Below, piece after piece: positions 19,221 through 41,806 of a stretch of DNA of 64,000 nt (position 1 is its first letter; each line of letters opens with the position of its first letter). The translations under genes and the position numbers were made by a program. This stretch comes from Selaginella moellendorffii (taxonomy: Eukaryota > Plantae > Lycopodiophyta). The notes beneath the pieces are model-generated. The model saw only the letters and a list, made by a program, of their open reading frames with translations, was not told the DNA's origin and searched no databases. The stretch spans positions 916,091 to 980,090 of the forward strand of contig NW_003314279.1 of assembly GCF_000143415.4 (NCBI RefSeq). The letters are read 5' to 3'.

Positions 19221-20289
19221 AGGTTCTTTGTGATCTCTATCGTCTCTAGCTCCATCTCATTGATTCATGCGATCGATTCGTCAAGAGGATTCCACAAACT
19301 GCTGCTGATCGAGCTCAAGCCACCGAAAAAAACGATTTTTATCTCTTCCACTTAGTAGAGGAAAACGATCCACGGTCGATGGCAGCCTTGCAAAACTCCT
19401 TTTTTTGTGGCGGTGGTGGTGGTACCGATTATCATGTCCTCAATCAATGTCCTCTATATTATCAAAGTGGGCCTCTGCGAAATTGGAATAACCACACAAG
19501 AGAACAGATGTACATGTACCATGAAAAAAAGAGAGGGAGGAGCACAAATAAATATATACAAAATAATGTTCATCGAATCAAATCGTTCGTTGGTGTCTGT
19601 CTCGTCTCGCCAATCTCATCTCTCTCACACACTCAAACACACACACACAAAAAAGAGAGGAGCACGGTTGGATTGGATGATCCGTTCTTTCTTTCCAGCG
19701 CGGAGGATCACGTCGTCTTTCGCGGGGTCACATCCTTCCATTTGAATCGACTAAAATTCCCAAGATCCAGAGGACTTTGCGATGCAGCTAGTATGTAGCT
19801 CGCCCTTGATTTGTCTGCGCCTGGAAGTTGGAAGCATCTTCTTTTCGCCACAGCAAATGGTCAAAAAGTTTGCCCTGGACCAAAGCTGACCGTTGACATA
19901 GATCGGTACGGTCTCTGTGCCGCTGACCACGTACGGACGAGCCCAGGTTTACTTTACCCTTTCCAGCCCTAAATCGCCTGTCAGCAGGAAAAGGAATGGG
20001 CCGTCAGATGGTTTTAGGGTAGTGATTTCGTTCGTCGATCGTCTGAGATGATCAGCGCGCTCGTCAGCCTGTTGCTCGAGGGCATGATCTGGTGCTCCGC
20101 GTATGGCCTCGTCGGGGCGCTGGCCCTCTGCCCGCATGTACACTGGACATTGATTCTTCTCTTTGGATGATCGATTGCGAGGAATCCACCGGTGGATCGA
20201 ATGATCGCGGTGATGTAGCGCTCAAATAAAAAATCGCCCATTCTTTCTGATTGATTGGCTCGTTTATCTAGCGAAAAAATCTTCTCGTG

Positions 20290-22200
20290 TTAGAGCCCTA
20301 AGTGCTCGCAGCGCGCTTCCATCGCTGCTCTGGCGGCAGGGCAGCGATCGCAGGTGAGGCGATTTCCCTGGTTGGCTGCGAATGCCTCGCGTCCGGCGCC
20401 AGTGAAGCCGGATTTCTTTGACGACGATGACGAGGAGGAGGAGGAGGAGGATCAGGGGCAGCGGCGCAAGGCGGGCGAGCTGGATTGGGCGACTAGAGCT
20501 CGGGAGCTTGTGATTCAGGATATGAGCTTCCGGAAGTTCACCGACGAGGATTTCCAGGGCCTACTGCCCCCGCATTTGCGAATCTCTAAGAAGAAGGCCA
20601 AGAAGAAGAAGAAGAAGACCAGGGCCAAGCAGGAAGGTGCCGAGGCTGCATTGCAGCTGGCGCAGCGCGATTAACACCAAAAAGAAGAAAGACAAGGACG
20701 ATGATGCGAGCAGCCTCCAGGCTGTGAATGACACCACACCGGTCGATCCAAAGAAGCTCAAAGCGCTGGCCAAGAGGCTTAACGCTCACAGGGAGCGCTA
20801 CATGAACATCGAGCAAAGCTACAGCGACAGCGAAGGTGACGAGGGCGAGGAGGAGCTCACGACCGAGTTGACAGTGGTTTATGAGGAGCGTCGAGAGGAA
20901 GGAGGTGGTGAAGAGTCGGATGATGGCGAGGAGCTTCCAGCGGCCTTGAAAGATCCAAGGCTGCTGGAAATTCGTCTCAACCAGGACTTGGTCGACTCGA
21001 GGGACGTGGAAGAAGTTTTGGAGACGATCGAGAGGGTCAAAGGAAGGTTTGGATTGAGCGCCATCAACGTCGCCACTGCTCTTCACAGGATCGCCAAGCA
21101 TATGGTGACGCTGTCCATGTCCGAGAGAAGAAGGCTCAAGTACGCCAAGCAGTGTGACGTGTTGCTCGTTGCTTCGGCTATGGAGCTTCTTCCGGAATGC
21201 AACGCACAGGGCGTCTCCAACATTGCCTATCTCCAAGATTGGAGGCCACCTTCTTTACCGCGGAGAGATGGAGATAATCGCTCGAGCAGCACTGGCGAAG
21301 GTTGACGAGTTCAATCCCCAGAACATTGCCGGAGCCTTTGCTTCCCATGCAGCACAGCTCGCCCGCACTCTTTGAGAAGCTCATGGACGCTGCGAGCAGA
21401 GTTTCCAAGGAGTTTCGAGCACAGGAACTGGCCCAGCTTCTTTGGTCGTTCGGGTCCATGGCTCGGCCTCTGGATTCTTTCCTGGACTCATCGGCTTTTC
21501 AGCAAGAACAAGGTTCTCCAGAGCTCGGTGAAGAACAGTTCCAAGAGAATCTTTCTCCGGGAAGCTATCGATCGAGCAGCTCTCGAGCATCGTGTGGTCT
21601 TATGCTGTTCTCGGCCAACTCCAGGGTCCATTCTTCGCTCACGTTTGCAAGGAGATACGCGCGTTTGAGCAGCTGGAACAGCACAAGCATATACACAGCT
21701 ATACCAGGTTGTGCTGGCCTCGAAGAGGGAAGGGAAGGATTTGCAGCTTGGCGGGATAGAGAAACGGGCTGCGGGTGCCTGGGAAAAGGAGAGAAGCTCT
21801 CGCAAGTCCACTTCCTTCTTGCAAAAGGATATTGAGAGGTTCTTGGTGTGCACTGGAAGGCAGTGGATCCTCGAGTACGTTGATGCGGATTACTCCCATG
21901 AAGGGCGGTAAAGTTGCGATCTAGGTTAACGGGCCATTCAAAAGGTTTTTTCTTTTTGTGATAGGAGAACTTCTGGGACACACTGTTTTGAAGCATAGAT
22001 TGCTGGGGGCTGCTGGATGGAAGATTATCTCTGCTTCCTATGCTGCGGTGAATTTTTTTTTTCTTTGTTGTAGTGGAGAAAAATGTGTGTTTTGATACAG
22101 TGGGAGAACTTACAAGGAGAGTCGGAGCACGTTGACTTCCTACACAAGCTTCTGGCTCCTCACATCCGTCAAATAGAGCGAGTGAGCGAGCAGTGTGACC
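20290..22200 (+). pseudogene. RAP-domain gene copy A (near full length, ATG deleted, frameshifted)
   Basis: Near-identical DNA to 39360-41471 with multiple deletions; ORF pieces 20354-20674 and 20637-21305. Confidence 0.92.
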
Positions 22201-22299
22201 ACTTTCACCTACCAGTTTCGAGCCAGAAGTAACTCGTGATTTATAAACCAGGAAATTTCCCACACCAGAAAAGCTAAGAACGCCTGGACCGGAATTCCA

Positions 22300-23120
22300 T
22301 CGGGAATTACTGGAACCAGGTTTAGTTTCCTATCATAAAAGTTCTTGACGCCGATGTGACCTTTGAGAAACTTGGTCTTGTAGTATCGGCTCGTAATGTT
22401 GTTGCTGGCGCCTGCCACTAAATCCCGTCCTACCTCTGCTTGATTGGCTAGAGACACCCGGGAGACGAACTAGGCAAGGAGAGTGAGAAAACAACTGCGG
22501 CTGCCACCACTCCCAGGTGCTTTCAATCCATCCTTGAAAGTCGTGTTTCATGATCACAATATCAGGATCATAGAATATATATGCTGGAGAATAATCTACC
22601 CTCTGGGAGCAAGATCTTGGTGCTCCTGCTCCACGTACTCATCCCTTACTTGGTCAGGAGGTCCATCTGGCGAGTGAGGTACTGCGTGGAGCTCACAGAC
22701 CTCTTGAGCATGGCGTGCATTCTCTTGTAGAGCTCGCCGTGGTGGAAGACCATTGCGTGCTCTCCCAGCACGTCCTTGAGCGATCGAGGGTGGCCAGACT
22801 CAAACAGCACCCCCTCGTTGTGCAGCACAAACTTGACGCCCTCCACGTCCGTGACCCGTGAGCAAGCTCGTCTTGAACACCGTCCCATACCTCTCCACAA
22901 AAAGATCATAATAAAGATCATATCAGAGCAACAAGATCATTGTATAGGTACTTCTTTCCCAAGACGTAAGGAGCCTTGGAGCGAGCAATCGTCACGTAAG
23001 GAATGAGCTCCCCAGTGAGAGGCCATCCCATGCTGAGCCTTTCCAGCTTCCGGAACCTCCATGGTCGCCAGTAAGCAAGTGCCACGAGCCTGAGCTCCGG
23101 CGATCCTTGCTACCTGCGCG
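22300..23120 (-). pseudogene. Cytochrome P450 (CYP85 clan, CYP90-like) 5' fragment 1
   Basis: SMGWPLTGELIPY...DVEGVKFVLHNEGVLFESGHPRSLKDVLGEHAMVFHHGELYKRMH; frameshifted, no heme motif. Confidence 0.8.
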
Positions 23121-23646
23121 GAAAGAGAGAGAGAGAGAGAGAGAGGACATTAGTTGGAAAAACTTTTGTGTCGCTATGTGCCAGACTTATTTACCCAGGT
23201 CGGTTGACCCACAAACTCGGTGGCTTTTCGATCTGTCGTGATGCTGTTGCTAGCACCTGCCGCCTCCAGAAGATTCCTTGTAATAGGGAAACAGATGACG
23301 ATTTTGGGCCGGGAAATAATGATGGCGATTCGCTCGATTAGTTTGTATCTAGCAGCATCGCGGGGAACCAAATACAGACAAGAGCATCAAGAGCCGCGGC
23401 TGCGTAGCACGGGGTCGGGAGATGCATCGTGCGGCCTCCAAGACATCGCCAGCGCTCTCGTGGCCATGTACGCGAAACTGCAACCAATTTCCGCTTCGGT
23501 CCTTACGAGGAATTGACGCACGACACGAGCACGACGATGCCGGTTGCAAGGGAAGAGCTGCTCTACAAGCTCTTTGGCCAAATGATTCAAAGGAAGAGGT
23601 GAAACGAGATGTCGAATTATAAAGAATAGATGTACAGGAAACAAAA

Positions 23647-24722
23647 CTAGCACGAGGCTCGAATTTCACCATGTCCTCCCGTGAGAGGCGAGAGCCTACC
23701 CATTTTGATCATGCCATTGGCGAAGGCAGTGAAAAATGCCTTCTGATTGTCCGCAAACTCCCTGACAAAGCCCGCCAGATCACTCTGCAACAGCTGCTGG
23801 TCTGAGAAGAGGAGCGACTGATTCGCTTGGACAGCTCGAAAGTACAAGTTGTCGAACGTGGTGGGGGAGGGATCCAAATTGTTCAATCTGTTTAGGGCTG
23901 TTGGAGGGCAAGTCTTCTCGAGTCGGGACTTGAGGGCCGGATCGATGCTATCCCCTGCGGTTCCGTTGAAGAGGCGGGCGCTGAATGTGGAGCACTGGGC
24001 CTGGCCGATGGAATGGCCTCCTGAGAGCGCTACGAGATCACGCTTGGAAAGGCCCCGCTTTTGGAAGCTCTCAATCAGCTGCGTTGCGGTGAGATTTGGG
24101 CTGGGAATGGCGTCCACCGCGGCAGCGACGCTCGCGGAGCTGGGATTGTCCCGTCGGCCAAACTCTACTGTCCATGACGGGCCACCAAGCTGCAAATTTC
24201 GAAAGAGAAGAAAGCATTTGTAACTCAAATCAATGGAGACCTCACTTACGGCTATGACGGATTCCCGGGCGCTCAGAGCAAGAATGTCCGCGCATGATAC
24301 AGTTTCCGGGCATGAAGTCTCCACGGCGCGTTTGATATTGTTGATGATTTTGAGTCCCTTGGTGGAGCGTCCGTCTCCTCGCTCCTTCCCGACCTGGGGG
24401 AGCAGCGATCCGTCACAGCCCTGAGCGACAGCCAAATAAATGACAAACGAGGACTTATTATTAGAGTACTTACTTGAGCAAAGCAATCGCGGAAGTGGAG
24501 CTTGAGGATGGATGCAGAGGATCGGCTGTCATTGGCAACTTCAAAGCGAATCACGCTTCTAGCGATCTGGGGGAAGTCGGGGCAAGTATTAGCGTAGAAA
24601 GAAGTGGAGAGCTCCGAGGGCGTTGTTGGTGATTCCTGGTGAATTGCATAGCGCCGCAGCAGCGTTAACGCGAGGAGTAATGCTGCTGAGGTGAGTGGAG
24701 CTAGATATTTAAATTGCTGCAT
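23647..24722 (-). CDS. Class III peroxidase-like protein copy 1 (3 exons; distal motif KLHFRDC)
   Basis: Signal/anchor peptide, LSTSFYANTCP, GCDGSLL, VSCADILAL, GRRD, LSGGHSIG, FDNLYF, GEIRASC; two GT-AG introns. Confidence 0.9.
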
Positions 24723-25004
24723 TGTGATCTTTCTTTCACGAGGGAGTGAAGGTGTGAAGAGAAGCTTGGCCTCTTGGCCCAGAACAAGAACAAGCTTCTC
24801 TGGATGGCTTTCAAGAAACAGCAAGAAAACTAGAACCCTAAACTAGACATTGGATTGTCGGGATTTAAGGATTCTCCAACGCGTTCAAATCTCCTTCGTC
24901 GAAGATATGCGAAAGGCCACGATCGATTGGCGTGACGCGAAAAACCGGGGTGTGCGGTTTTTCGCGGAGAATTTTCGCGTTATTTTGGGACCCTTTTTAC
25001 TATG

Positions 25005-25050
25005 CGCCACGTGTTTCCAACAATTGGAAACACGTGGCGAAACACGTGTT
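25005..25050. promoter_or_regulatory. 16-bp perfect palindromic stem carrying G-boxes, plus a third G-box
   Basis: cgccacgtgtttccaa-caa-ttggaaacacgtggcg followed by aacacgtgtt. Confidence 0.6.
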
Positions 25051-25399
25051 CTCTTCCGCATATCAAAAAAGCTAGCGGTCAAACCGACCCGTTTTCATTC
25101 ATGGACTCATGCGCTCACAGCCACAAAGCCTCAAAGAAAAAACACACCTTTCTAGTCGTAGCGTCTGCCTAACACCCCGCGCGCTCAGTCTCTGCTCCAC
25201 GCCTCCGAGGAATCAATCTCGCTCCGCCCCCAACCTCGCAAGAACCCTCTCCCAAGATGTCCCGCCACGTCAGCCTGTTCGCCACGTAAGCTGTTCGCCA
25301 AGAAGCGCCGCCCGTTATGTGATAGAACCAAAAAATAGAAAAAGTTAGGGTTAGGGTTCGACAGAGGATTCAGTTAGGGCTTCGCTAACTGGTCATTGA

Positions 25400-25812
25400 T
25401 TCAAACGGGACACCTTAGCCCGCTACGGTGTAGCGGTCACTCCCCCGTTTTCATTGCTAGTGCCAGCACCGAGCTCCAATCCGCCGCGACCCAGAATGGC
25501 AGCCTCGTCGATGACCTTGCTGCCGTGCCGAGCTGCCCCACTCCCGATTTCTCCCGGGGTGTGGGAACTCACGTCACTTTGCTCAACCCGCTAAAGGTGC
25601 TGGTGCCACCCAGCGCTCGCGTTCCACACAGAAGATCTCTCCTCGTTTACGTTCCAGGAATGGATTGCACGGGCCAGGGGATTCGACCGCAGTTGCCATC
25701 TCTCGTCGCTGCCGGGTACGTGTAGCCTTTGTGTTTAGAATCACGACTAGACTAAAGTTTCGCCATTGCAGCCACGACATAAGATGTGTATACATCCCGA
25801 GCAGCAACAGAG
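25400..25812 (+). pseudogene. Esterase/lipase/thioesterase (PES/ELT acyltransferase-like) 5' fragment
   Basis: LLVYVPGMDCTGQGIRPQLPSLVAAG|HDIRCVYIPSSNR resembles the ELT-family LLYLPGIDGTG...FDIWCLHIP block; truncated at the peroxidase repeat arm. Confidence 0.6.
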
Positions 25813-25999
25813 TTTGAGGGAAGTGTGAAGAGAAGCTTACTCTAAAGAAAGAGAACACGGGAACACGGGAACTCTACTACATATGTGTTCTATTTTCTTG
25901 CTGTTTCTTGAAAGCCATCCAGAGAAGCTTGTTCTTGTTCTGGGCCAAGAGGCCAAGCTTCTCTTCACACCTTCACTCCCTCGTGAAAGAAAGATCACA

Positions 26000-27075
26000 A
26001 TGCAGCAATTTAAATATCTAGCTCCACTCACCTCAGCAGCATTACTCCTCGCGTTAACGCTGCTGCGGCGCTATGCAATTCACCAGGAATCACCAACAAC
26101 GCCCTCGGAGCTCTCCACTTCTTTCTACGCTAATACTTGTCCCAACTTCCCCCAGATCGCTAGAAGCGTGATTCGCTTTGAAGTTGCCAATGACAGCCGA
26201 TCCTCTGCATCCATCCTCAAGCTCCACTTCCGCGATTGCTTTGCTCAAGTAAGTACTCTAATAATAAGTCCTCGTTTGTCATTTATTTGGCTGTCGCTCA
26301 GGGCTGTGACGGATCGCTGCTCCCCCAGGTCGGGAAGGAGCGAGGAGACGGACGCTCCACCAAGGGACTCAAAATCATCAACAATATCAAACGCGCCGTG
26401 GAGACCTCATGCCCGGAAACTGTATCATGCGCGGACATTCTTGCTCTGAGCGCCCGGGAATCCGTCATAGCCGTAAGTGAGGTCTCCATTGATTTGAGTT
26501 ACAAATGCTTTCTTCTCTTTCGAAATTTGCAGCTTGGTGGCCCGTCATGGACAGTAGAGTTTGGCCGACGGGACAATCCCAGCTCCGCGAGCGTCGCTGC
26601 CGCGGTGGACGCCATTCCCAGCCCAAATCTCACCGCAACGCAGCTGATTGAGAGCTTCCAAAAGCGGGGCCTTTCCAAGCGTGATCTCGTAGCGCTCTCA
26701 GGAGGCCATTCCATCGGCCAGGCCCAGTGCTCCACATTTAGCGCCCGCCTCTTCAACGGAACCGCAGGGGATAGCATCGATCCGGCCCTCAAGTCCCGAC
26801 TCGAGAAGACTTGCCCTCCAACAGCCCTAAACAGATTGAACAATTTGGATCCCTCCCCCACCACGTTCGACAACTTATACTTTCGAGCCGTCCAAGCGAA
26901 TCAGTCACTCCTCTTCTCAGACCAGCAGCTCTTGCAGAGTGATCTGGCGGGCTTTGTCAAGGAGTTTGCGAACAACCAGAAGGCATTTTTTACCGCCTTC
27001 GCCAATGCCATGATCAAAATTGGTAAGCTCTCGCCTCTCACGGGAGGACATGGTGAAATTCGAGCGTCGTGCTAG
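26000..27075 (+). CDS. Class III peroxidase-like protein copy 2 (exons 26000-26248, 26302-26472, 26533-27075)
   Basis: Mirror image of 23647-24722 (coordinates sum to 50722 at start and stop); same motifs. Confidence 0.9.
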
Positions 27076-27478
27076 TTCCTATACGTCTATCCTTTTTCAC
27101 TATACTCCATTACAACAAAGAAAAAGAAACTTCACCTCAGTTCCATCCGCAATCTATGCTTCAAAACAGTGTGTCCTAGAAGATCTCCTGTAACAAACAC
27201 ACAAAACGAATCACAAAAAGAAAAAACATCCTAAGAGCTTTGAGTACTGACCTGTGTTCCGAGCAAAATGGCTCCTCGATCACAACTTTACTGCCCTTCA
27301 TGGCAAAATCCAGAGAGTAATCCGCATCAACGTTCTCGGGATCCACTGCCTTCCACTGCACCCCCGGATATCCTTTTGCAAGAAAGCGGTGGACTTGCGA
27401 GAGCTTCTCTCCTTTTCCCAGGCACCCGCAGCCCGCTTCAAGCTCCAAATCCTTCCCTTCCCTCTTCAAGGCCAGCAC

Positions 27479-27566
27479 TGAGACAAATCGGGATCAAAGC
27501 GCACCGCACTAGCGGACAGAACAGGAAAACCCTAATGGACGCGTGGCGAGGGTGTGTCGTGTAACA
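27479..27566 (-). repeat. Copia 3' LTR (88 bp)
   Basis: 86/88 identical to 31700-31787. Confidence 0.97.
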
Positions 27567-30500
27567 CTCCCCCCCAAACCGAAGCCACTCACCAAACCAA
27601 ATCTGTCACGTAGGAGCTGAAACTGGTGTGGCCCCAACGGCTTAGTGAGAAGATCAGCTGGCATATCCTGTGTCCCGAGATGTTGGACGGCGAGGGTGCC
27701 ACTGTCAACCAACTCACGTATGTAGTGAAATTGGACTTCAATGTGCTTCGAGCGGGCATGGTGGACGGGGTTCTTGGACATGGCAATGCTGCTTCGGTTG
27801 TCACACCAAGAAGTAGTGGGGCCAGCTTGTACGCATCCCAGCTCAGCAAGTAACCCTCGAGCCCAAACCACGTCCCTACTACCAGTAGTGAGTGCGATGT
27901 ACTCTGCTTCTGCACTAGAAAGGGCCACCACAGATTGTCGCTTGGAGGCCCACGTGATGGCACCTCCTGAGAAGGAAAGGCAAATGCCAGAAGTCGAGCG
28001 ATGACCTTTGTTGTTGGCAAAACTAGCATCCGTGTAGCATGCTAATGATGCATGACCCCCTGAATAAGCAATGCCATAGTCCATAGTGCCCCGGAGGTAT
28101 CTCACGATATGCTTGGCGGCTTGCCAATGTATGGTGGTTGGTGATGTGTTGTACTGACTCAAGGCAATAGTCGCATATGTGATGTCAGGGCGAGTCATCA
28201 GGGCCAAATATGTGAGGCAACCAATGAGATGCCGATAGGGAGTCCCAGTGGGTAGAGGCTCACCAGACTGCTCAAGTGTGAGGTCGATAGCACCAACGAC
28301 CATCGGGGTCTTGACAGGGTGGCAATCACGCATACCAAACCGATCCAGCAAGACTTCGACTTTACGTCGTTGGCTAAGCATGTAGCCACCAGAATCAGGA
28401 TCACGTGCGACTTCAAAGCCAAGAAAGTAGGAGACTTGGCCAAGGTCCTTCATCTGGAATTGCTGGCTGAGAGCATCTTTCAGAGCATCAATGGCATCGT
28501 TGTCATCACCCATGATGAGCAAATCATCAACGTAGAGGGCCACAATAACCATGCACTCAGCATGACCATTGACATACACATTGTGATCAGCATGACAGCG
28601 ACGAAAGCCTTGAGCACGTAGGGTGGCATCAAATTTTTGATACCAAATACGGGAGCTCTGTTTTAAGCCATACAAAGCTTTTCACAATTGCCATATAGGG
28701 CCACCAGGGGTAACATCATCCTCAAAACCAGGAGGTATATGCATATAGATGTCCTCTTGCAAATCCCCATTCAGAAATGCAGTTTTGACGTCCATATGGT
28801 GGACTTGCCATTTGCGAGCAGCCGCAAGGGCAAAAAGAGTACGGAGGCTGGCCATTTTTACAACCGGTGAGAATGTTTCATCGTAGTCAAGGCCATGGAC
28901 TTGGCGAAAACTGCGAACAACCAACCGTGCCTTATAACGTACAACCTGGCCATCTTTCCCATACTTTTTGGAAAAAATCCATTTTGGATCCAAAACACGT
29001 CGTCCCGGTGGCGCTGAATCAACTGGAACATAAGTTCCGTTAACCCGAATGGAAGAAACTTCTTCCGCAATAGCTTCCATCCAAGATGAAGCCTCAGGTC
29101 CTGAGATGGCCTCATCATAAGTCATGGGAATGCCGACGTCAACAAGGCCACAAAAGTCATCAAGCTCTGCAGCATCTGCTTCAGCATTTTCCCGGACTTT
29201 TAACGAGGGCCGACGTTCCCGGGGGTGATCAAGAACTGGCATCGGATCAGGCATGCCACGACGTCGACAAGGTGGTGGAGGTGTCGGAGGCCTGTCCTCG
29301 ACTGGAGGAGCATCAGCTGGTTCAAGCATGTCCAGAAGTGGAGGATTCCCCAATGGAATCTCTGGTGGCAACTCATGAATAGGATCTTGAGGTGGAGGCA
29401 AGGGTGGACCATCTCCCATAAGTGGGATCAAAGGAACAAGTCGAGTCTCAGCAATAAAGGAAGGATCTTGAAGAGCCTCTGTAGGCATGGGAAAGTCATC
29501 TTCATTGAACATGACATCAGTGCTTACAATAGCCTTATGAAATGCAAGATCCCACAACTTGTAAGCTTTCCTCCCGATAGTGTCGTCCTGTGCATATCCC
29601 ACGAAGATGAATTTTTTACTCTTGGGATCTAGCTTTTTCCGAAGTTGATCAGGGGTATGTGCGTATGCTGCACAACCGAAGACCCGAAAGTGGGACACAT
29701 CAGGAGTAGAACCTGTCCAAAATGCCTCAGGGGTTTTTCCATCCAAAGCAGCCGTGGCAAGGCGATTTTGTACATGCATTGCTATGGCTATGGCCTCTTG
29801 CCAAAACATCTTGTTAAGATGTGCATCAGCTAACAAAGCACGAGTAGCATTGACAAGAGCACGATTCTTCCTTTCTGCAACACCATTTTGCTGGGGGGTG
29901 TAGCGGGCTGTAGCTTGCAAGCGTATGCCTACATCACGACAAATGCCCCGAAGCTCATTGTTGAGGTATTCACCACCACCATCAACTCAAAGAGCTTTTA
30001 TCTTTCGACCAAGGAGGTTTTCAACGTACGCCTTGTACGTTTGAAAGGCAGCAACTGCATCACTCTTACGCATCAAGAAGTGGATGCATGTTCGACGGCT
30101 ATAGTCATCAATGAATGTGATGAAATATCTTGCGCCATCGTGACTTGGCACGTCCATAGGGCCGCAAAGATCAGAATGGACTAAGTCCAGAAGTCCAAGT
30201 GCTCGATGCTTACTTGGTGAGAAATTCCGGCGGTGATGCTTGCCTAAAACACAAGCTTCACAGAATGTAGATGGGATACGTCGGAAATCCAAGCCAGTAA
30301 CAATATCTTGGGACTTCATCCGTTGAAGAGATTGATAATGAACATGACCGAGTCTTTTATGCCAAAGCTCCGCACGAGAATCTGCCTCCACAGTCTGAAA
30401 GGCCTGAACTGGGTCGACAGCAGTAATCTCATACAAGTCCCCAATGCGTGACCCACGAAGCAACTGTGTACCAAGCATATGAAAGTCACTAGAGTCAACT

Positions 30501-31675
30501 AAAGAGACTCCCTTTGCATCAAAGACTACCACCGCATTTTGATCACATATCTTGGCGACGGATATTAAGTTTCGTCGCAAGGTGGAAACATGCATGGCAC
30601 CATCAAAGGCCATGGTCCTTCCATGATCGAGTGAGAGCCGGAATTGCCCAATGCCGTCCACAGGGATGGTGGTATTGTCACCTAAATGAACACCACGTTT
30701 TCCAATGCTCGGCTGATAACACTCAAAAAGACTCTGCTTATGACTCATAAGATTAGTACAACCAGAGTCTAAGAGCCACCGGCTTGGTGCGGCAAGTGCC
30801 TCTGCGTTGTAGAGCTCCCCAACAGCCTCATTTGCAGTAGCAATTCCATCACGCTCAAGCAAATTGGCTTTCGCCAACGTAGCTAGTCGCTTGACAGGCT
30901 TGGGAGCAAGGCAATCTCGAGCCCAGTGGCCCATCTCCAAGCAGCGAGCACACTGATTCTTCGCAAGTCTAGGCTTGGCACGCCCAGATGCCACGGAATT
31001 TTGCCCTTTCTGGGCATTTGCAGCTGCATGCGGTTTTGCCACCTGGGCATCACCAGAAGCCTGCGAAGCATACATAGCCTGTGGCATTTCAGCTCTCTCA
31101 CTTCGCATGGCCTCAATGTTGCGAAGACTCCTCACGGCATCTGCCCAAGTCATCCCTGGTTGGAGAAGCAGGCTCTCAACTGCATTCTTCCAGCTCGCTG
31201 GCAAGGACCTGTAGAGCCGCAGCCTCTACTGCTCATCCGTGAGACAGTGCTTCGCCCCAACAGCCGCAAGTTGTGTGAAGAAGCCCTGGAGCTTGGCAGT
31301 GTGAGGCTGGATACTGCCATTTTCCTCTAGCCTCAAGGAATCCATTTGTGAATGGATGTTGAAGACATCCATTTCACTCTTGGTGCCATAAGTGTCACTC
31401 AGCCACTTCCAAAGCTCTGCCGTAGTGGACTTTGGAATCGATGGGGCAGCAAAGAGGACATTTGAAGACAAGCACATCACAATACTCCCTCTAGCCTTGG
31501 AATCCCGAAGGTTCCAATCACGCACCTCAGCAGCGCTAGAGCCTGGAGCCGGCGATGACTCTGTCCCATCTACAATCCCCAACAAACCATGAAACAAGAG
31601 ATAGGATTCAAGATGGATCTTGAATCCCTCAAACCCTTCTCCATCAAACTCGCGGATGGATGGCTTTCCTTCCAT
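27509..31675 (-). pseudogene. Copia gag-pol polyprotein, single frame with three premature stops
   Basis: Zn knuckle CARCLEMGHWARDC, protease WLLDSG, integrase LWHKRLGH...TPQQNGVAER, RT HMDVKTAFLNG and YVDDLL, RNase H TDAS...SSAEAEY. Stops at 31226, 29987 and 28682, all in the same frame. Confidence 0.95.
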
Positions 31676-31699
31676 AGCGCTATCCCAGCTCCGATACCA

Positions 31700-31787
31700 T
31701 GAGACAAATCGGGATCAAAGCGCACCGCGCTAGCGGACAGAACAGGAAAACCCTAATGGACGCGTGGAGAGGGTGTGTCGTGTAACA
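31700..31787 (-). repeat. Copia 5' LTR (88 bp)
   Basis: Directly abuts the PBS; 86/88 identical to 27479-27566. Confidence 0.97.
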
Positions 31788-33359
31788 AGCACAACCTGGT
31801 ATAGCATGCTTGTGCTATGTCAAACGCGTGTACCTCCTTGCAAACGAATGGACGCTGGAGTTGGCCGAGAATAGCATAAGACCACGCGATGCTCGAGAGC
31901 TGCTCGATCGATTCTTGGAACTGTTCTTCACCGAGCTCTGGAGAACCTTGTTTTGCTGAAGAGCCGCGTCCAATGACTCCAGGAAAGAATCCAGAGGTTG
32001 AGCCATGCCTAAAGAAGCTGGGCCAGTGCCTGTGCTTGAAACTCCTCTACTCGCAGCGTCCAAGAGCTTCTCAAAGAGTGCGGGCGAGCTATGCTGCATG
32101 GAAGCAAAAGTTCCGGCTACGTTGGCAATGTTCTGGGGATTGAACTCGTCAACCTTCGCCACTGCTGCTCGAGCGATTATCTCCATCTCTCCGTGGTAAA
32201 GAAGGTGGCCTCCAATCTTGGAGATGGCCCAGGCAATGTTGGAGACGCCCTGTGCGTTGCATTCCGGAAGAAGCTCCATAGCCGAAGCAACGAGCTCGGC
32301 GACGTCACACTGCATGGCGTACTTGAGCCTTCTCGCCTCGGACATGGACAGCGTCACGATCTTGTGAAGAGCAGTGGCGACGTTGATGGAGCTCAATCGA
32401 AACCTTCCTTTCACTCTCTCGATCGTCTCCAAAACTCCTTCCACGTCCCTCGAGTCGACCAAGTCCTGGTTGAGACGAATTTCCAGCAGCCTTGGATCTT
32501 TCAAGGCCGCTCGCCATCATCTGACTCTTCACCACCTCCTTCCTCTCGACGCTCCCCATAAACCACTGTCAACTCGGTCGTGAGCTCATCTTCGCCCTCG
32601 TCACCTTCGCTGCTCGCATCATCGTCCTTGTCTTTCTTCTTTTTGGTCTTAATCGCGCTGCGCGATTCCTCCACCTGCAATGCAGCCTCGGCACCTTCCT
32701 GCTTGGCCCTGGTCTTCTTCTTCTTCTTGGCCTTCTTGGAGATTCGCAAATGCGGGGGCAGTAGGGCCTGGAAATCCTCGTCGGTGAAGTTCCGGAAGCT
32801 CATATCCTGAATCGCAAGCTCCCGAGCTCTAGTCGCCCAATCCAGCTCGCCCGCCTTGCGCCGCTGCCTCTGATCTTCCTCCTCCTCCTCCTCCGAATCA
32901 TCGTCGTCAAAGAAATCCGGCTTCACTGGCGCCGGACGCGATGGCGCCGCGGCATTCGCACCCAACCAGGGAAATCGCCTCACCTGCGATCGCTGCCCCT
33001 GCCGCCAGTGCAGCGAAGAAAGCGCGCTACGTACAGCGCCGAGGAATGTAGGAGCTCCATGGCGAGCACTTAGGGCTGGGTAACACACGAAAAGATTTTC
33101 TCGCTAATCAATCAGAAAGAATGGGCGATTTTTTAGTTGAGCGCTACATCACCGCGATCATTCGATGATCTTTTCCATCTTTTCTTGGTTTTTTTTGTTG
33201 TTCATCACCTTTTCGTGAGTCGTCCTAGAATAAAGAATAGGATCTCATCCGCCATACTTTCACGTACCTCGGACTTGATCTTTTCGTTTCAAGCACTCGT
33301 TTCATTAAAGTGCCACTTTATAATTCTTCCGAGCAGCGCGGCTTCGAAAACTCCAGCTA

Positions 33360-33745
33360 TGGTGGTGGAAGTAAGGCGGCACGCAATGGAGCTGTTTTGC
33401 CTGCTGCGCAAGGAATCCAGCCAGGAAGCGTCCGTGGCGATGCGAGAGGAGCCCGGGATCATAGCCGAGCTCGTGAAGAACCTGTCCGAGGCGGAGAGAA
33501 CGTCCATGCTGGGGATCATCGCGAAGGGGGATGGAGTCGTGAGGAGCGCTCTGGATCATCACCACCAAGATGGAGACAAGGGGCTACTTCACGTAGTGGC
33601 GGCGCTGGTGGTGGACGCCTCCCAGGACGCTGCGACGATCGAGGCGGCGGTGGGCATCGTTCTAAAGTTCGCGAAGCTTGGGGTGGAGACGCAGAAGATG
33701 ATCGAGCGGCTGGTGCAGCTGCTGGAGCCCGGGAGGTCTCTAGCC
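33360..33745 (+). pseudogene. ARM-repeat fragment (SAUL1/PUB43-44-like U-box protein C-terminal part)
   Basis: TIEAAVGIVLKFAKLGVETQKMIERLVQLLEPG resembles ARM repeats of SAUL1-type ligases; isolated fragment with abrupt junctions. Confidence 0.5.
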
Positions 33746-34050
33746 TCAGAGTAATCTGACACGGTCCCTGAGTCGCAATCCCAGGCCCTGAGAGTTCCAT
33801 CGGTAGTACCAGTGAAGAGCCCTGCCGAGTCTGGAACCATAGCTATTCCCGTGATGCTCTCCTCGTGCTCTTTGAGCGTGGTGACGAGCGCCAACGGTGG
33901 AACTCTCAGGTGACGGTGGTAACAGCGTGGAGGACCTTGCACATCTCCCCATATCTACACGACCCTTCCAGCCAATCCGCACAAGCCCTTTGCGTGTGAG
34001 GGCTTCTTTGACCCCAATATCAGTGCCTCTGTAGGCGGCGGAAGAGCTGC
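33745..34050 (-). pseudogene. CCCH zinc finger-WD40 (ZFWD-like) fragment 1
   Basis: CADWLEGSCRYGEMCKVLH followed by TTLKEHEESITGIA...LFTGTTDGTLRAWDCDSG. Confidence 0.8.
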
Positions 34051-34057
34051 TGGGTAA

Positions 34058-34920
34058 ATAGCACAGCTCGCCCGCAGTCTTTGAGAAGCTCATGGCGTTC
34101 CCAGGGAGTTTCGAGCACAGGAACTGGACCAGCTTCTTTGGTCGTTCGGGTGCATGGCTCAACCTCTGGATTCTTTCCTGGTTCTCCAGAGCTCGGTGAA
34201 GAACACTTCCAAGAAGAACCTTTCCCCGGGAAGCTATCGATCGAGCAGCTCTGGAGCATCGCGTGGTCTTATGCTGTTCTCGGCTAACTCCAGGGTCCAT
34301 TCTTCGCTCACGTTTGCAAGGAGATACGCGCGTTTGAGCCCCTGGGACAGCACAAGCATATGTTGCAGCTGACACAGCTATACCGGCCTTGAAGTGGGAA
34401 GGGAAGCATTTGCAGCTTGGCAGGATAGAGAAGCTGGGAAAAGGAGAGAAGCTCTCGCAAGTCCACTTCTTTCTTGCAAAAGGATACCGAGAGGTTCTTG
34501 GTGTGCACTGGAAGGCAGTGGATCCCCGAGTACGTTGATGCGGATTACTCTCTGGATTTTGCCATGAAGGGCGGTAAAGTTGCGATCGAGGTCAACCAGC
34601 CATTTTGCTCGGAACACAGGTCAGTACTCAAAGCTCTTAGGATGTTTTTTCTTTTTGTGATTCGTTTTGTGTGTTTGTTATAGGAGATCTTCTGGGACAC
34701 ACTGTTTTGAAGCATAGGTTGCTAGAGGCTGCTGGATGGAAGATTATCTCTGCTTCCTATGCTGAGGTGAAATTTTTTTTCTTTGTTGTAGTGGAGAAAA
34801 ATGTGTGTTTTGATGCAGTGGGAGAACTTACAAGGAGAGTCGGAGCACGTTGACTTCATACAAAAGCTTGTGACTCCTCACATCTTTCAATTAGAGCAAG
34901 CGAGTGAGCAAGCAGTGTGA
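34058..34920 (+). pseudogene. RAP-domain gene copy C (3' half)
   Basis: Matches 40520-41471 including both introns, with deletions. Confidence 0.9.
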
Positions 34921-35039
34921 CCACTTTCACCTACCAGTTTCGGGGTTACATATTTTGGATTGCAACCAGAAGTAACTCGTGATTGAAAGCTCGGAATTCC
35001 ATCGGGAATTACTGGGAGACCAGGTTTAGTTGCCTTTGG

Positions 35040-35370
35040 GAAACTTCGTTGTGGAGCACAAACTTGATGCCCTCCACGTCCGTGACCCGTGAGCAAGCTT
35101 GTCTTGAACACCGTCCCATACCTTTGATCATACCCAGCAACAAGATCATTGTATAGATACTTCTTTTCCCTCTCCTTTGGGAAGACCTAAGGAGCCTCGG
35201 AGCAAGCAATCGTCACGTAAGGAATGAGCTCCCCAATGAGAGGCCATCCAATGCTTCCTGGGGGGAGCCTCTCCAGCTTCCGAAACCTCCATGATCGCCA
35301 GTAACGAGCCAGAGAGCTCTGGCGATCCCTGCTACCTAAATTCTGAAATCCACCATAGCACTTTGCGGCT
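35040..35370 (-). pseudogene. Cytochrome P450 (CYP85 clan) 5' fragment 2
   Basis: RLPPGSIGWPLIGELIPY and DVEGIKFVLHNE. Confidence 0.8.
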
Positions 35371-36066
35371 CGATGGAGAGAGAGAGAGAGAGAGAGAGAG
35401 GAAACGTAAAGAGAGAAAGAAAGAAAGGCTTTCGCTAACGTGATCTTCGCAAGATCTTCTCGCAAAATAAAAGCTTAGTTATTCGCTCTAAGTTACCACT
35501 TGTATCCATACTCTGGCTCGTAAAAATCCTGTTCTTGCAGCTCTTTCTCTTTTTTGTCGTAGGAAAACTCCATCTCCTTCATGGCGTTGGATTTCACGTA
35601 GCTTCCCTGGCTCACCAGCGAGTAGTGAGACGAGGAGGAGCTCTTGTTCTTCAGAGCTCGCTGCCTCAGCTGGTTTTCAATGCTGACATTGGTTGGAAGA
35701 ACTTTCGTCGCTATCTGTGAGAATTATTTGCCCTTTTGCTTAACCCTGGCTTGAGAATTCTGGAGCTGTTATTAGTTGTTGCAATCTGGGTTTGTGAAAG
35801 TCTATTCCAGAGATCTTCCAGAATAACAAGGTTCTAAATTTCAACTTTCACTACTCGTAGGGGCAATACCAGATTCTGTGTTTGCATAGCCGAAACTTTT
35901 CAAGTTTCTCTCTAGCTAGGTTTTGCTCCATATTCCAGTCTTCCTGCTATGCTTCCTAACAGCAGAATATAATCATTCCATTTCATTTCTGTAAAGAAGA
36001 ATCATTGAAACTAAAAGCTCTCGATTTTAGTTTCTTGCAATTTTTACCGATGAGACTGAATACTGC

Positions 36067-36765
36067 CTATTTGTAATTTATTCCAAACCGAGCCAACCTG
36101 ATGGTGTCGAGCCACACCATGCAGTGCCTGGCAAATGCAGTACGAGTTATTTGGGCGATTCTGGCTTGCAAGCGACACTGGAAAACCCTAGTGCTGTGAA
36201 CCTTCTTGCCAGATATCTGAACAAGCTTCCTGTTGTCACGCTCTCGTGCTATGTCCTGTGGCGCTCTTGCGGAGGAATATGCACAAGTCCCGCAGCGCCT
36301 CGCCAAATTCAAGCACACGATGAACAGCGACGGAATGCAGCAAAAGGTGAGTCCCAAGACGTTGGGGCTGGATGCTCCATAAGACCACTCCATCTTGTCG
36401 TCCCGGGATCTCTTTTGCCCCGTGCCCCGGTCTAAAGAGAGCGTAGAGACGAGCAATCCTTGCAAGCAAATTTGGGCGCTTGATCCGCTAGAACCTCCCC
36501 AAGAAGATTCGAAAAAACTGGTCAATGAATCGCTGGTGAGCCGGAGCTCGCCGATCCGGCGTCCCTTTGGAACACTCGGTGCCAGGACGGTGGCCGGGAG
36601 GAAGCGGCCCCACAAAGGTTTGTCCCTTGAACAGAGCATGGCAGTCTGGACTCTGGATGGAACGCTCCAAAAACGCTCGGAGATGGTGATCTCATACTCC
36701 GTACCTTGATCGCAGAACCTTGGGATCCGCGGGGACCTCGGGCGCAACCAGAACCACGACGCCAT
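36067..36765 (-). other. Unassigned 232-codon ORF in the spacer of the second inverted repeat
   Basis: ATG-started, GC-rich in its 5' half; no motif recognised. Confidence 0.25.
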
Positions 36766-36854
36766 AGCTCGGATCTTTAGCTGGTAAGAATCATGTTTTA
36801 GGATAGTCTCGGCGTGCAGATGCCAAGGACCTCTTTCTTTCTCTCGATCGAGCT

Positions 36855-37620
36855 ATGGTGGATTCGAGAATTTAGGTAGCAGGGATCTGGCTCGTTACTG
36901 GCGATCATGGAGGTTTCGGAAGCTGGAGAGGTTCCCCCTGAGAATCATGGGATGGCCTCTCACTGGGGAGCTCATTCCTTACATGACGATTGCTCGCTCC
37001 GAGGCTCCTTACGTCCCAATGGAGAGGGAAAAGAAGTATCTATACAATGATCTTGTTGCTGGATTGTGACTTTAGTATGATCTTTGTGTGGAAAGGTATG
37101 GGACGGTGAGCTTGCTCACGGGTCACGGACATAGGGCATCAAGTTTGTGCTCCACAACGAGGGGGTGCTGTTTGAGTCTGGCTACACTCGATCGTGCTGG
37201 GAGAGGACAGCGAGCTCTATAAGAGAATGCACGCCATGCTCAACAGGTCTGTGGGCTCCACGCCTCTCAAGAAGTACCTCACACCAAGTAAGGGATGAGT
37301 ACGTGGAGCAGGAGCACCAAGATCTCGCTCCCAGAGGGTAAATTATTCTCCAGCATATATATTCTATGATCCTGATATGGTGATCTTGTAATACGACTTT
37401 CGAGGATGGATTGAAAGCACCTGGGAGTGGTGGCAGCCGCAGTTGTTTTCTCGCTCTCCTTGCCTAGTTCGTCTCCCTCGGCGCTGGAAATCGATCGGCT
37501 GTCTCTAGCCCATCAAGCAAAGGTAGGACGGGATTTAGTATCTGGTGCAAGGCTTGAAAGTGGCAGGCACGAGCCGATACTACAAGATCAAGTTTCCCAA
37601 AGGCAACTAAACCTGGTCTC
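36855..37620 (+). pseudogene. Cytochrome P450 (CYP85 clan) 5' fragment 3
   Basis: Reverse complement of fragments 1 and 2 (MGWPLTGELIPY; IKFVLHNEGVLFESGY). Confidence 0.8.
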
Positions 37621-37714
37621 CCAGTAATTCCCGATGGAATTCCGAGCTTTCAATCACGAGTTACTTCTGGTTGCAATCCAAAATATGTAAACCCGAAACT
37701 GGTAGGTGAAAGTG

Positions 37715-38547
37715 GTCACACTGCTTGCTCGCTCGCTTGCTCTATTTGACGGATGTGAGGAGCCACAATCTTTTGTATGAAGTCAAGTGCCCCGACTCTC
37801 CTTGTAAGTTCTCCCACTGCATGAAAACACACATTTTTCTCCACTACAACAAGAAAAAAAATTTCACCTCAGCATAGGAAGCAGAGATAATCTTCCATTC
37901 AGCAGCCTCCACCAACCTATGCTTCAAAACAGTGTGTCCCAGAAGATCTCCTATAACAAACACACAAAACGAATCACAAAAAGAAAAAACATCCTAAGAG
38001 CTTTGAGTACTGACCTGTGTTCCGAGCAAAATGGCTCGGCCGGTTGACCTCGATCACAACTTTACCGCCCTTCATGGCAAAATCCAGAGAGTAATCCGCA
38101 TCAACGTACTCGGGGATCCACTGCCTTCCAGTGCACACCAAGAACCTCTCGGTATCCTTTTGCAAGAAAGAAGTGGACTTGCGAGAGCTTCTCTCCTTTT
38201 CCCAGCTTCTCTATCCTGCCAAGCTGCAAATGCTTCCCTTCCCACTTGAAGGCCAGAACAACCTGGTATAGCTTGGGGTTGGCCGAGAACAGCATACGAC
38301 CACGCGATGCTCGAGAGCTGCTCGATCGATAGCTTCCCCGGGAAAGATTCTTCTCGGAACTGTTCTTCACCGAGCTCTGGAGAACCTTGTTCTTGCTGAA
38401 GAGCCGATGAGTCCAGGACAGAATCCAGAGGTTGAGCCATGACCCGAACGACCAAAGAAGCTGGGCCAGTTCCTGTGCTCGAAACTCCTTGGGAACTCCG
38501 CTCGCAGCGTCCATGAGCTTCTCAAAGAGTGCGGGCGAGCTGTGCTA
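37715..38547 (-). pseudogene. RAP-domain gene copy D (3' half)
   Basis: Mirror of copy C; shares its derived changes (KDTERFL, gaagctgggaaaagg deletion). Confidence 0.9.
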
Positions 38548-38815
38548 AGCTCTTCCGCCGCCTTCAGAGGCACTGATATTGGGTCAAAGAAGCCCTCACA
38601 CCCAAAGGGATATGGGGAGAGGTGTAAGTTCCTCCACGCTGTTACCACCGTCACCGGGTTGGCGCTCGTCACCACGCTCAAAGAACACGAGGAGAGCATC
38701 ACGGGAATAGCTATGGTTCCAGACTCGGCAGTGCTCTTCACTGGTTCTACCGATGGAACTCTCAGGGCCTGGGATTGCGACTCAGGGACCGTGTCAGATT
38801 ACTCTGAGGCTAGAG
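38548..38815 (+). pseudogene. CCCH zinc finger-WD40 (ZFWD-like) fragment 2
   Basis: YGERCKFLH...TTLKEHEESITGIA...FTGSTDGTLRAWDCDSG; mirror of 33745-34050. Confidence 0.8.
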
Positions 38816-39381
38816 GACAAACTTCGTCTCCTATCTCTGTCACGCGTATATGAGGCGGGACTCCTTGGATCAGTCGTACATGGCTGGAACTCTGGAACTC
38901 TGAAGTCTAGAGGATTCATGCGTAGGGGAACGACTTGGTACGAGATCAAATCTGATCAAAGCAATGCAAGTCAAGAAGATTAACGTGACAATGCATGAAA
39001 CGAACAAGTCGGTAAGAATTATAAAGTGGCACTTTAATGAAACGAGTGCTTGAAACGAAATGATCAAGTCCGAGGTACGTGAAAGTAGATCCTATTCTTT
39101 ATTCTAGGAACGAAAAGGTGATGAGCGAGAGGACACACAACAAAAAAACCATGCAGTTCTTCCAAGAAAAAATCGAAAAGATTTATTATGAAAACTCGAC
39201 GTAGAGAGGATGGTACCCTCGTTGTCAAACTGGGACTTCCCCTGGGCATTCCAAGGATCGTGGAATCCATCGAATGATCGCGGTGATGTAGCGCTCAACT
39301 AAAAAATCGCCCATTCTTTCTGATTGATTAGCGAGATAATCTTTTCGTGTTAGATGTGTTACCTAGCCCTAAGTGCTCGCC

Positions 39382-41471
39382 ATGGAGCTCCTACATTCCT
39401 CGGCGCTGTGCGTAGCGCGCTTCCATCGCTGCTCTGGCGGCAGGGGCCAGGATTTTGGATTCTTCCAGCAGCGGCAGCGATCGCAGGTGAGGCAATTTCC
39501 CTGGTTGGCTGCGAATGCCGCGGCGCCATCGCGTCCGGCGCCTGTGAAGCCGGATTTCTTTGACGACGATGACTCGGAGGAGGACGAGGAGGATCAGAGG
39601 CAGCGGCGCAAGGCGGGGGAGCTGGATTGGGCGACTAGAGCTCGGGAGCTTGCGATTCAGGATATGAGCTTCCGGAACTTCACCGACGAGGATTTCCAGG
39701 CCCTACTGCCCCCGCATCTGCGAATCTCCAAGAAGAAGGCCAAGAAGAAGAAGAAGAAGACCAGGGCCAAGCAGGAAGGTGCCGAGGCTGCATTGCAGCT
39801 GGAGGAATCGCGCAGCGCGATTAAGACCAAAAAGAAGAAAGACAAGGACGATGATGCGAGCAGCCTCCAGGCTGCGAATGACACCACTCCAGTCAATCCA
39901 AAGAAGCTCAAAGCGCTGGCCAAGAGGTTTAACGCTCACAGGGAGCGCTACATGAACATCGAGCAAAGCTACAGCGACAGCGAAGGTGACGAGGGCGAAG
40001 AGGAGCTTACGACCGAGTTGACAGTGGTTTATGGGGAGCGTCGAGAGGAAGGAGGTGGTGAAGAGTCGGATGATGGCGAGGAGCTTCCAGCGGCCTTGAA
40101 AGATCCAAGGCTGCTGGAAATTCGTCTCAACCAGGACTTGGTCGACTCGAGGGACGTGGAAGAAGTTTTGGAGACGATCGAGAGAGTGAAAGGAAGGTTT
40201 CGATTGAGCTCCATCAACGTCGCCACTGCTCTTCACAGGATCGCCAAGCATATGGTGACGCTGTCCATGTCCGAGACGAGAAGGCTCAAGTACGCCAGGC
40301 AGTGTGACGTGGCCGAGCTCGTTGCTTCGGCTATGGAGCTTCTTCCGGAATGCAACGCACAGGGCGTCTCCAATATTGCCTGGGCCATCTCCAAGATTGG
40401 AGGCCACCTTCTTTACCGGGGAGAGATGGAGATAATCGCTCGAGCAGCACTGGCAAAGGTTGACGAGTTCAATCCACAGAACATTGCCAACGTAGCCGGA
40501 GCGTTTGCTTCCATGCAGCACAGCTCGCCCGCACTCTTTGAGAAGCTCATGGACGCTGCGAGTAGAGTTCCCAAGGAGTTTCGAGCACAGGAACTGGCCC
40601 AGCTTCTTTGGTCTTTCGCGTGCATGGCTCAGCCTCTGGATTCTTTTCTGGACTCGTTGGACGCGGCTCTTCAGCAAGAACAAGGTTCTCTGGAGCTCGG
40701 TGAAGAACAGTTCCAGGAAGAATCTTTCCCCGGGAAGCTATCGATCGAGCAGCTCTCGAGTATCGCGTGGTCTTATGCTGTTCTCGGCCAACTCCAGCGT
40801 TCATTCTTCGCTCACGTTTGCAAGGAGATACTCGCGTTTGAGCAGGACGCGTCCCTGGGACAGCACAAGCATATGTTGCAGCTGACACAGCTATACCAGG
40901 TTGTTCTGGCCTTGAAGTGGGAAGGGAATCATTTGGAGCTGGCTCTTGGTGACAGGATAGAGAAGCTGGCTGCAGGTGCCTGGGAAAAGGAGAGAAGCTC
41001 TCGCAAGTCCACCTCTTTCTTGCAAAAAGATATCGAGAGGTTCTTGGTGTGCACTGGAAGGCAGTGGATCCCCGAGTACGTTGATGCGGATTACTCTCTG
41101 GATTTTGCCATGAAGGGCGGTAAAGTTGCGATCGAGGTCAACGGGCCGAGCCATTTTGCCCGGAACACAGGTCAGTACTCAAAGCTCCTAGAATGTTTTT
41201 TCTTTTTGTGATTCGTTTTGTGTGTTTGTTACAGGAGATCTTCTGGGACACACTGTATTGAAGCATAGATTGCTGGAGGCTGCTGGATGGAAGATTATCT
41301 CTGCTTCCTATGCTGAGGTGAAGTTTTTTTTCTTTGTTGTAGTGGAGAAAAATGTGTGTTTTGATGCAGTGGGAGAACTTACAAGGAGAGTCGGAGCACG
41401 TTGACTTCATACAAAAGCTTGTGGCTCCTCACATCCGTCAAATAGAGCAAGCGAGTGAGCGAGCAGTGTGA
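39382..41471 (+). CDS. RAP: RAP-domain / octotricopeptide-repeat chloroplast RNA-binding protein, intact copy (exons 39382-41170, 41235-41317, 41370-41471)
   Basis: INVATALHRIAK, AQGVSNIAWAISKIGG, FNPQNIANVAGAFA, and RAP domain YSLDFA...VAIEVNGPSHFARN|GDLLGHTVLKHRLLEAAGWKII...|WENL; open spliced frame. Confidence 0.92.
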
Positions 41472-41806
41472 CCTCTTTCACCTACCAGTTTCGGGTCAAA
41501 ACTTGTGAATGAACGGTCGGCCGGCTTGTGGTAAGCTATGGCGGAAGAAGAGAGAGAAGAGGAGCCACTCGGCTTGTCTGTGAACGTAAAGAAAGGACGG
41601 TAACATTGGTTGAATCGTCGGAGCCACAGACAGCGCGATCAAACAGCTGTTTACCGAGAGTAAGCTAGGAGCACTAGTATCCTCTGCTTTTTTTGTGTAG
41701 GGTTATCAGTGCATGGTTCTACTTGCTTAAATTCGCCTCTCCTGCATTGATATAACGCCCCCAGATCTTTGGTTTTGCAGCGGCAGCAGCAGCGAGAACG
41801 AGCAAA

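Follow-up and report, generated by a model that had tools for sequence, protein, structure and literature searches.

In a 64-kb stretch of the genome of the lycophyte Selaginella moellendorffii (the window, to which all coordinates refer), the region from 20.2 to 41.5 kb consists of nested inverted segmental duplications. We assume that these were formed locally and at the DNA level, without participation of a transposon, through repair or replication events of the fold-back or template-switching type in quick succession, and that the copies decayed afterwards; we assign a probability of about 0.6 to this explanation. A gapped self-comparison of the window, complemented by multiple alignments, reveals five copies (A to E) of a RAP-domain gene in alternating orientation (+ - + - +), a head-to-head pair of intact genes for class III peroxidases, three 5' fragments of a CYP90D/ROT3-like cytochrome P450 gene, two zinc-finger/WD40 (ZF-WD40) fragments and a Copia element located within RAP copy B. 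RAP, which we take to be the orthologue of Arabidopsis At2g31890, is an organelle RNA-processing gene that is normally present as a single copy. A preliminary description of this DNA had pointed to five copies of a single-copy gene. The number is correct but the statement is too strong: only copy E is intact, A and B are near full-length pseudogenes and C and D are 3' fragments, so that the five copies represent one working gene.

The region is organised around two palindromes, each with long reverse-complement arms around a spacer. The arms of palindrome 1 (23621-24836 and 27095-25887) are 97.8% identical and continue through RAP copies A and B; its axis lies at (24836+25887)/2 = 25361. The arms of palindrome 2 (33738-35359 and 38815-36852) continue through RAP copies B and E, and its axis lies at (35359+36852)/2 = 36105. 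RAP copy B is common to both, lying outermost in the right arm of palindrome 1 and likewise in the left arm of palindrome 2. The repeating unit is a RAP gene followed by an oppositely oriented CYP90D-like 5' fragment that ends at a (GA)n tract. Palindrome 1 mirrors the order RAP, P450 fragment, segment X and peroxidase around a spacer of 1.05 kb. Palindrome 2 mirrors RAP with its upstream region, the ZF-WD40 fragment, an inverted RAP 3' part and the P450 fragment around a spacer of 1.4-1.5 kb, and the mirrored RAP upstream stretch comprises 33202-33332 and 39124-39009. All repeats and the block order given in the preliminary description were recovered, including the axes at ~25.36 and ~36.1 kb, the common RAP copy B and the mirrored upstream region. 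Its labels for RAP, peroxidase and P450 agree with database matches and that for ZF-WD40 does so for the WD40 part, whereas the labels 'ARM' and 'ELT' were not confirmed. The components are as follows.

20180-22220, plus strand: RAP copy A, near full-length pseudogene without the common upstream region (20196-22220 aligns with 39269-41493 of copy E)
22221-23115, minus strand: P450 5' fragment of the A side, tail to tail with RAP copy A, ending in the (GA)n tract
23116-23620, no strand: segment X, unique, between P450 fragment and left peroxidase, no self-match, missing from the right arm
23621-24836, minus strand: left peroxidase, intact class III, coding 24722-23650 (XP_002972085.2 / EFJ27002.1)
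24837-25886, no strand: spacer 1, 1,050 bp between the divergent peroxidase starts, with ACGT/G-box-like repeats and (TTAGGG)2
25887-27095, plus strand: right peroxidase, intact class III, coding 26000-27072 (XP_024532762.1, XP_002971880.2, EFJ26797.1)
27105-27478, minus strand: RAP copy B, 3' part, which breaks off at the equivalent of ~41347 in copy E and there meets the peroxidase 3' flank
27479-31787, minus strand: Copia long terminal repeat (LTR) retrotransposon splitting RAP copy B
31788-33332, minus strand: RAP copy B, 5' part (33166-31788), plus the upstream region common with E
33333-33737, no strand: 'ARM' segment, 405 bp, B side only, unrecognised by any library
33738-34060, minus strand: ZF-WD40 gene fragment of the C side
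34060-34944, plus strand: RAP copy C, 3' fragment
34945-35428, minus strand: P450 5' fragment of the C side, with an internal deletion of 425-466 bp
35429-36829, no strand: spacer 2, ~1.4 kb (1,400-1,490 bp), unique, with an unrecognised open reading frame (ORF) of 232 codons
36830-37690, plus strand: P450 5' fragment of the D side
37691-38546, minus strand: RAP copy D, 3' fragment
38546-38815, plus strand: ZF-WD40 fragment of the D side, comprising the terminal part of a CCCH finger plus a single WD40 repeat
38816-39008, no strand: unique segment of the E side, 193 bp, opposite the 'ARM' segment
39009-41496, plus strand: RAP copy E, intact gene with upstream region and three exons

The coding sequence of RAP copy E comprises 39382-41172, ~41231-41317 and 41367-41468, followed by the stop codon. 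Its exon 1 is 100% identical to XP_024532760.1 (657 aa, PF08373), and the exon-1 ORF of 612 codons, used as the query of the RAP protein search, matches the 'RAP domain-containing protein, chloroplastic-like' of S. moellendorffii. Copy E is the only full-length open RAP gene with a C-terminal RAP domain; the other four have frameshifts and truncations. The word-based protein search, within its length limits, detected RAP-like models of S. moellendorffii on two allelic scaffolds only. Introns and upstream sequence are kept in the copies, which indicates that the duplicates were made at the DNA level.

The divergence of the copies points to a common age. Over the 5' half of RAP the copies differ pairwise by 2.9-3.8% in substitutions, over the 3' half by 3.2-6.7%, and parsimony patterns show that variable sites are mostly private to one copy. 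The maximum likelihood tree, (E,B,(A,(C,D)99)39), has tips of 0.018-0.040 and internal branches of 0.006-0.008 and is thus nearly star-shaped overall, but C and D group together, either as later copies or through conversion. With a divergence of 4.4% in their distal 340 bp, the peroxidase arms belong to one age class with the RAP copies. The star-like tree, the predominance of private changes and this agreement between peroxidase arms and RAP copies suggest that all blocks derive from one short burst of duplication. The copies had been characterised previously as near-identical apart from many short deletions; this is roughly right, with substitutions at 3-6% and 19-32 indel events per pair. 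Copy E is separated from all other copies by 19 differences in exon 1, and since 13 of these are synonymous, most of them accumulated in a functional lineage, probably the one leading to E.

The two peroxidase genes (Pfam peroxidase, E 2e-55) are both annotated as genes and apparently intact, and the arm homology of palindrome 1 stops ~29 bp past the peroxidase stop codon. Only three differences are present in the inner 850 bp of the arms, which include both introns in identical form, as compared to 15 in the next 340 bp. Because of this uneven distribution we conclude that the inner 850 bp were homogenised by arm-to-arm gene conversion in a tract that adjoins the spacer. Both proteins read KLHFRDC at a position where class III peroxidases usually have RLHFHDC, and KLHFRDC is retained in each of the four allelic copies of the two haplotypes, all of which stay open. 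Spacer 1 contains a perfect 16-bp inverted repeat around CACGTG, which resembles a G-box, and a 16-bp tandem repeat with ACGT cores (25005-25039 and 25263-25300); these repeats are plausible candidates for a shared bidirectional promoter of the divergent peroxidase genes. An exact (TTAGGG)2, the sole one in 64 kb, is located at 25345-25356, ~10 bp from the centre of palindrome 1. One more TTAGGG follows ~20 bp beyond, and a AACCCTAA telo-box is present at the inner edge of the left arm (~24834). The (TTAGGG)2 could be a promoter motif or a scar of the rearrangement. It is too weak to be counted as a telomere scar, and a TTTAGGG array is absent.

The P450 fragment corresponds to residues ~1-177 of a CYP90D/ROT3-like enzyme and matches CYP90B1 in the PDB at E 1e-4. 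Its amino-acid identity is 83-85% to the CYP90D-like SELMODRAFT_182839 of S. moellendorffii and 78% to ROT3B-2, both encoded on other scaffolds. For SELMODRAFT_182839, the nearest annotated P450, only 88% of positions agree with at least one of the copies. A recent capture from an annotated gene was rejected on the basis of this best value of ~88% amino-acid identity, with the reservation that a parent may be unannotated or hidden by clustering. Neither for the P450 nor for the ZF-WD40 fragments (Pfam WD40, E 2e-8) is an intact parent found within the 64-kb window. The P450 fragment may be the relic of a former neighbour rather than a piece that was shuffled in. In copy C the P450 ATG is at 35356, ~20 bp from (GA)12.5 at 35376-35400.

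The Copia element has 88-bp LTRs with two mismatches, TG..CA ends, a 5-bp target duplication (AGCAC) and the domains gag_pre-integrs, rve and RVT_2 in Copia order, as is typical of an LTR retrotransposon. It is only 4.3 kb long, its LTRs are unusually short, and its polyprotein is fragmented into four or more ORFs. The 'ARM' segment (33397-33754) and the spacer ORFs gave no match in Pfam, in a PDB sequence search or in the ESM Atlas, and Rfam and tRNA scans of the whole window gave no hits. The region is flanked by ordinary genes, PP2C and PPR on the left and an enolase from 41.8 kb on the right. Elsewhere in the window, self-comparison detects an inverted repeat of 183 bp with 99.5% identity (12975-13157 / 13325-13507) and an old one of 73.5% identity over ~290 bp (8661-8929 / 10855-11145) near an F-box ORF (10372-11379).

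An independent view of the region is provided by the protein models of a second allelic scaffold (2,302,610 bp; the scaffold of the window has 2,350,400 bp), which cover RAP copy A, the adjoining P450 fragment, both peroxidases and the intact RAP gene. The second scaffold encodes an intact RAP allele (XP_024533092.1). Its model EFJ26488.1 follows copy A with the same frameshifts and out-of-frame stretch and runs on into the same P450 fragment. It also encodes one peroxidase with the C-terminal residues specific for the left arm and one with those specific for the right arm. Copy A, its junction to the P450 fragment and the peroxidase palindrome are present in two independently assembled haplotypes and hence predate the haplotype split. 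This comparison with the alternate haplotype, which the preliminary description had proposed as a check, indicates at the protein level that the left palindrome, at least, is real and older than the split.

The pseudogene copies are heavily eroded. Copies A and B have each accumulated ~20 private deletions of 3-117 bp (3-38 bp in A) with a median of ~10 bp and hardly any insertions. A comparison of A with B gives 32 indel events per 65 substitutions. In the pseudogene copies, deletion events number ~0.5 for each substitution, a very high ratio that may have a bearing on the small genome of the species. The private deletions show microhomology of 0-4 bp, near the chance level. We have considered these deletions as a product of error-prone copy synthesis and set this aside, since copy A also differs between the two haplotypes, with three or more small indels within its first 161 codons; the erosion is for the same reason regarded as continuing decay and not as copying damage.

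The junctions give hints to the mechanism. A, C and D have the same junction of RAP 3' end and P450 fragment, ~28 bp past the RAP stop codon, and in all three homology ceases within one purine tract, (GA)n, which precedes the P450 ATG by ~20 bp. This places at least two independent junctions in the tract, one for A versus C/D and the other at the inner border of the C|D palindrome. This fits a fork-stalling or break-prone site at which the template was switched, and we infer that (GA)n acted in this way. Copy A carries an 8-bp insertion at its left junction, and the 12-bp palindrome that this creates, TCCACCGGTGGA, suggests a small templated footprint of the fold-back type. Between identical flanks, 405 bp ('ARM') on the B side stand opposite 193 non-homologous bp on the E side, a replacement that looks like filler-type repair. 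The remaining junctions have a microhomology of 0-2 bp where they are readable. The junction analysis called for earlier has thus yielded the palindromic insertion, but microhomology of at most 1-2 bp.

On this basis we propose that fold-back or template-switching events, closely following each other, would have built the nested inverted duplications locally, with the (GA)n tract presumably acting as break or switch site. Afterwards only copy E and both peroxidases would have remained functional, and the inner 850 bp of the peroxidase arms would have been homogenised by gene conversion. The right arm of palindrome 1 presumably lost ~1.5 kb, Copia would have inserted into copy B later, and the pseudogene copies would have been eroded by many short deletions, a process that probably continued after divergence of the haplotypes. 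Several observations weigh against this proposal. The divergence of C and D (3.2%) is lower than that of B and E (4.8-5.8%), whereas a single palindrome-forming event predicts equal values. Part of the star-like shape of the tree could stem from gene conversion between copies instead of simultaneity. A simple snap-back would be expected to leave shorter spacers than those of 1.05 and 1.4 kb. Finally, no junction has clear microhomology, both parent sequences being known at a minority of junctions, so that switching by microhomology-mediated break-induced replication (MMBIR) is no more than a candidate. The interpretation given in the preliminary description is supported as far as real, DNA-level nested palindromes are concerned; the choice between fold-back template switching and breakage-fusion-bridge cycles cannot be made from one haplotype.

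The strongest competitor, which we nevertheless consider unlikely, is a slow stepwise history, in which separate inverted and tandem duplications, inversions by recombination and deletions accumulated over a long time while gene conversion evened out the divergence. Gene conversion does operate at this locus, the divergence between C and D is below that between B and E, and a comparison of shared deletions is weakly conflicting, with a 6-bp deletion common to A and D (and C) and others common to A, B and D. Against a stepwise origin, the terminal branches of the RAP tree are long and similar and the internal ones very short, and most substitutions and deletions are private to one copy, a pattern that frequent conversion would have erased.

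Less probable still are breakage-fusion-bridge cycles, in which a broken chromatid end is repeatedly fused with its sister. Such cycles would give the observed + - + - + ladder of five RAP copies with two axes, and the (TTAGGG)2 close to the first axis could be read in this sense, but the plant-type TTTAGGG is absent and the short match is accounted for just as well by a telo-box promoter motif. The asymmetric spacers of 1-1.5 kb (1,050 and ~1,400-1,490 bp) are at variance with the little or no spacer expected of such fusions. The flanks of the folds are non-contiguous joins, with ZF-WD40 joined to the middle of RAP and 405 bp opposite a filler of 193 bp, and the locus is situated among the ordinary genes PP2C, PPR and enolase.

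That a Pack-MULE, a Helitron or another gene-capturing transposon carried and amplified the RAP/P450/ZF-WD40 mosaic appears very improbable. The mosaic does consist of intron-containing fragments of at least three unrelated genes, and A, C and D have one 3' boundary in common, but the copies differ in their 5' ends, all lie within 21 kb, and the protein search, within its length limits, detected RAP-like models on the two allelic scaffolds only. In domain scans of the window no transposase or Rep/helicase domain was found outside Copia. The ends of the modules have neither terminal inverted repeats nor target duplications, and no inverted match extends beyond the duplications themselves. Helitron-like 3' ends occur three times as compared to 2.4 expected, none of them at a boundary. 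The earlier statement that transposase, terminal inverted repeats and Helitron ends are lacking is therefore upheld at the module edges, the only transposon protein domains being those of Copia. Least probable of all is an assembly artefact, i.e. inverted copies produced by mis-joined haplotypes or chimeric clones, for although the public S. moellendorffii assembly keeps both haplotypes as separate scaffolds and the second-haplotype check is limited to copy A, the P450 fragment next to it, both peroxidases and the intact RAP gene, the 64 kb are continuous without any N, the second scaffold, whose assembly was independent, again has copy A with the P450 fragment as well as both peroxidases, and an artefactual origin of B, C and D is strongly argued against by arms that are 3-6% diverged with private indels, far above allelic difference, and by the intact target duplication of the Copia element within copy B.

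A more far-reaching version of the fold-back and template-switching model is conceivable, though we regard it as doubtful. A single replication-based event with multiple switches (chromoanasynthesis-like) might have taken place in the lycophyte germline, seeded at the (GA)n tract in the P450 5' untranslated region as a sequence able to form H-DNA, and the locus might be part of a genome-wide tendency to inverted duplication combined with an unusually high rate of short deletions. If true, this deletion rate could help to explain the very small genome of S. moellendorffii.

Our literature search found no paper on this locus or on inverted duplications in Selaginella. The locus is a clear case of a known kind of rearrangement and leaves the knowledge of rearrangement mechanisms unchanged. 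It represents a complex inverted rearrangement in an early-diverging vascular plant that is well preserved and readable base by base, with several breakpoints that coincide with a single purine tract. Such structures can apparently persist for a long time, as the left palindrome, at least, predates the haplotype split. Genes within a palindrome can stay intact and converted, as both peroxidases have, while flanking copies decay, and neutral DNA at this locus is removed mainly by frequent deletions of ~10 bp.

Among known systems, breakage-fusion-bridge products have the copy ladder of alternating orientation in common with the locus, which differs by its long asymmetric spacers, non-contiguous joins, interstitial gene-rich setting and lack of a real telomere array. 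With Pack-MULE or Helitron captures the locus shares a chimeric cassette of intron-retaining gene fragments, but it has no termini, target duplications or transposase, and its copies are unequal-ended and all local. The inverted-duplication model for the birth of hairpin small interfering RNA and MIRNA loci (PMC3237417) likewise involves inverted pieces of an expressed gene, here RAP, near the parent; in the present case the arms are of kilobase size and at least 1.4 kb apart, and Rfam finds nothing in the window. Double-strand-break repair with filler DNA or ectopic template copying is known from maize and wheat (PMC2686159, PMC3445842). The short foreign fragments at the locus, ZF-WD40 and the 405-bp 'ARM', resemble such filler in that they sit precisely at junctions or take the place of other sequence where the flanks are identical. 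Large genomic palindromes with arm-to-arm gene conversion are present, for example, on the human Y chromosome. These, too, have inverted arms around a unique spacer, intact genes in both arms (here the peroxidases) and a tract of near-zero divergence adjoining the spacer, whereas the arms of the present locus are only 1-8 kb long and mostly pseudogene, with conversion limited to ~850 bp. Duplication-inverted triplication-duplication structures (DUP-TRP/INV-DUP) and fold-back inversions have been described in human disease loci and cancers. Compared to these and to rearrangements with inverted segments of the fork stalling and template switching (FoSTeS)/MMBIR type (PMC7025897), the Selaginella locus is fixed in a lycophyte germline, old (3-6% diverged) and heavily decayed, and its junctions have at most 1-2 bp of microhomology where they are readable; it resembles them in its nested segments of alternating orientation, in breakpoints that join unrelated nearby sequence, in the palindromic insertion at one junction and in the apparent near-simultaneity of several copies.

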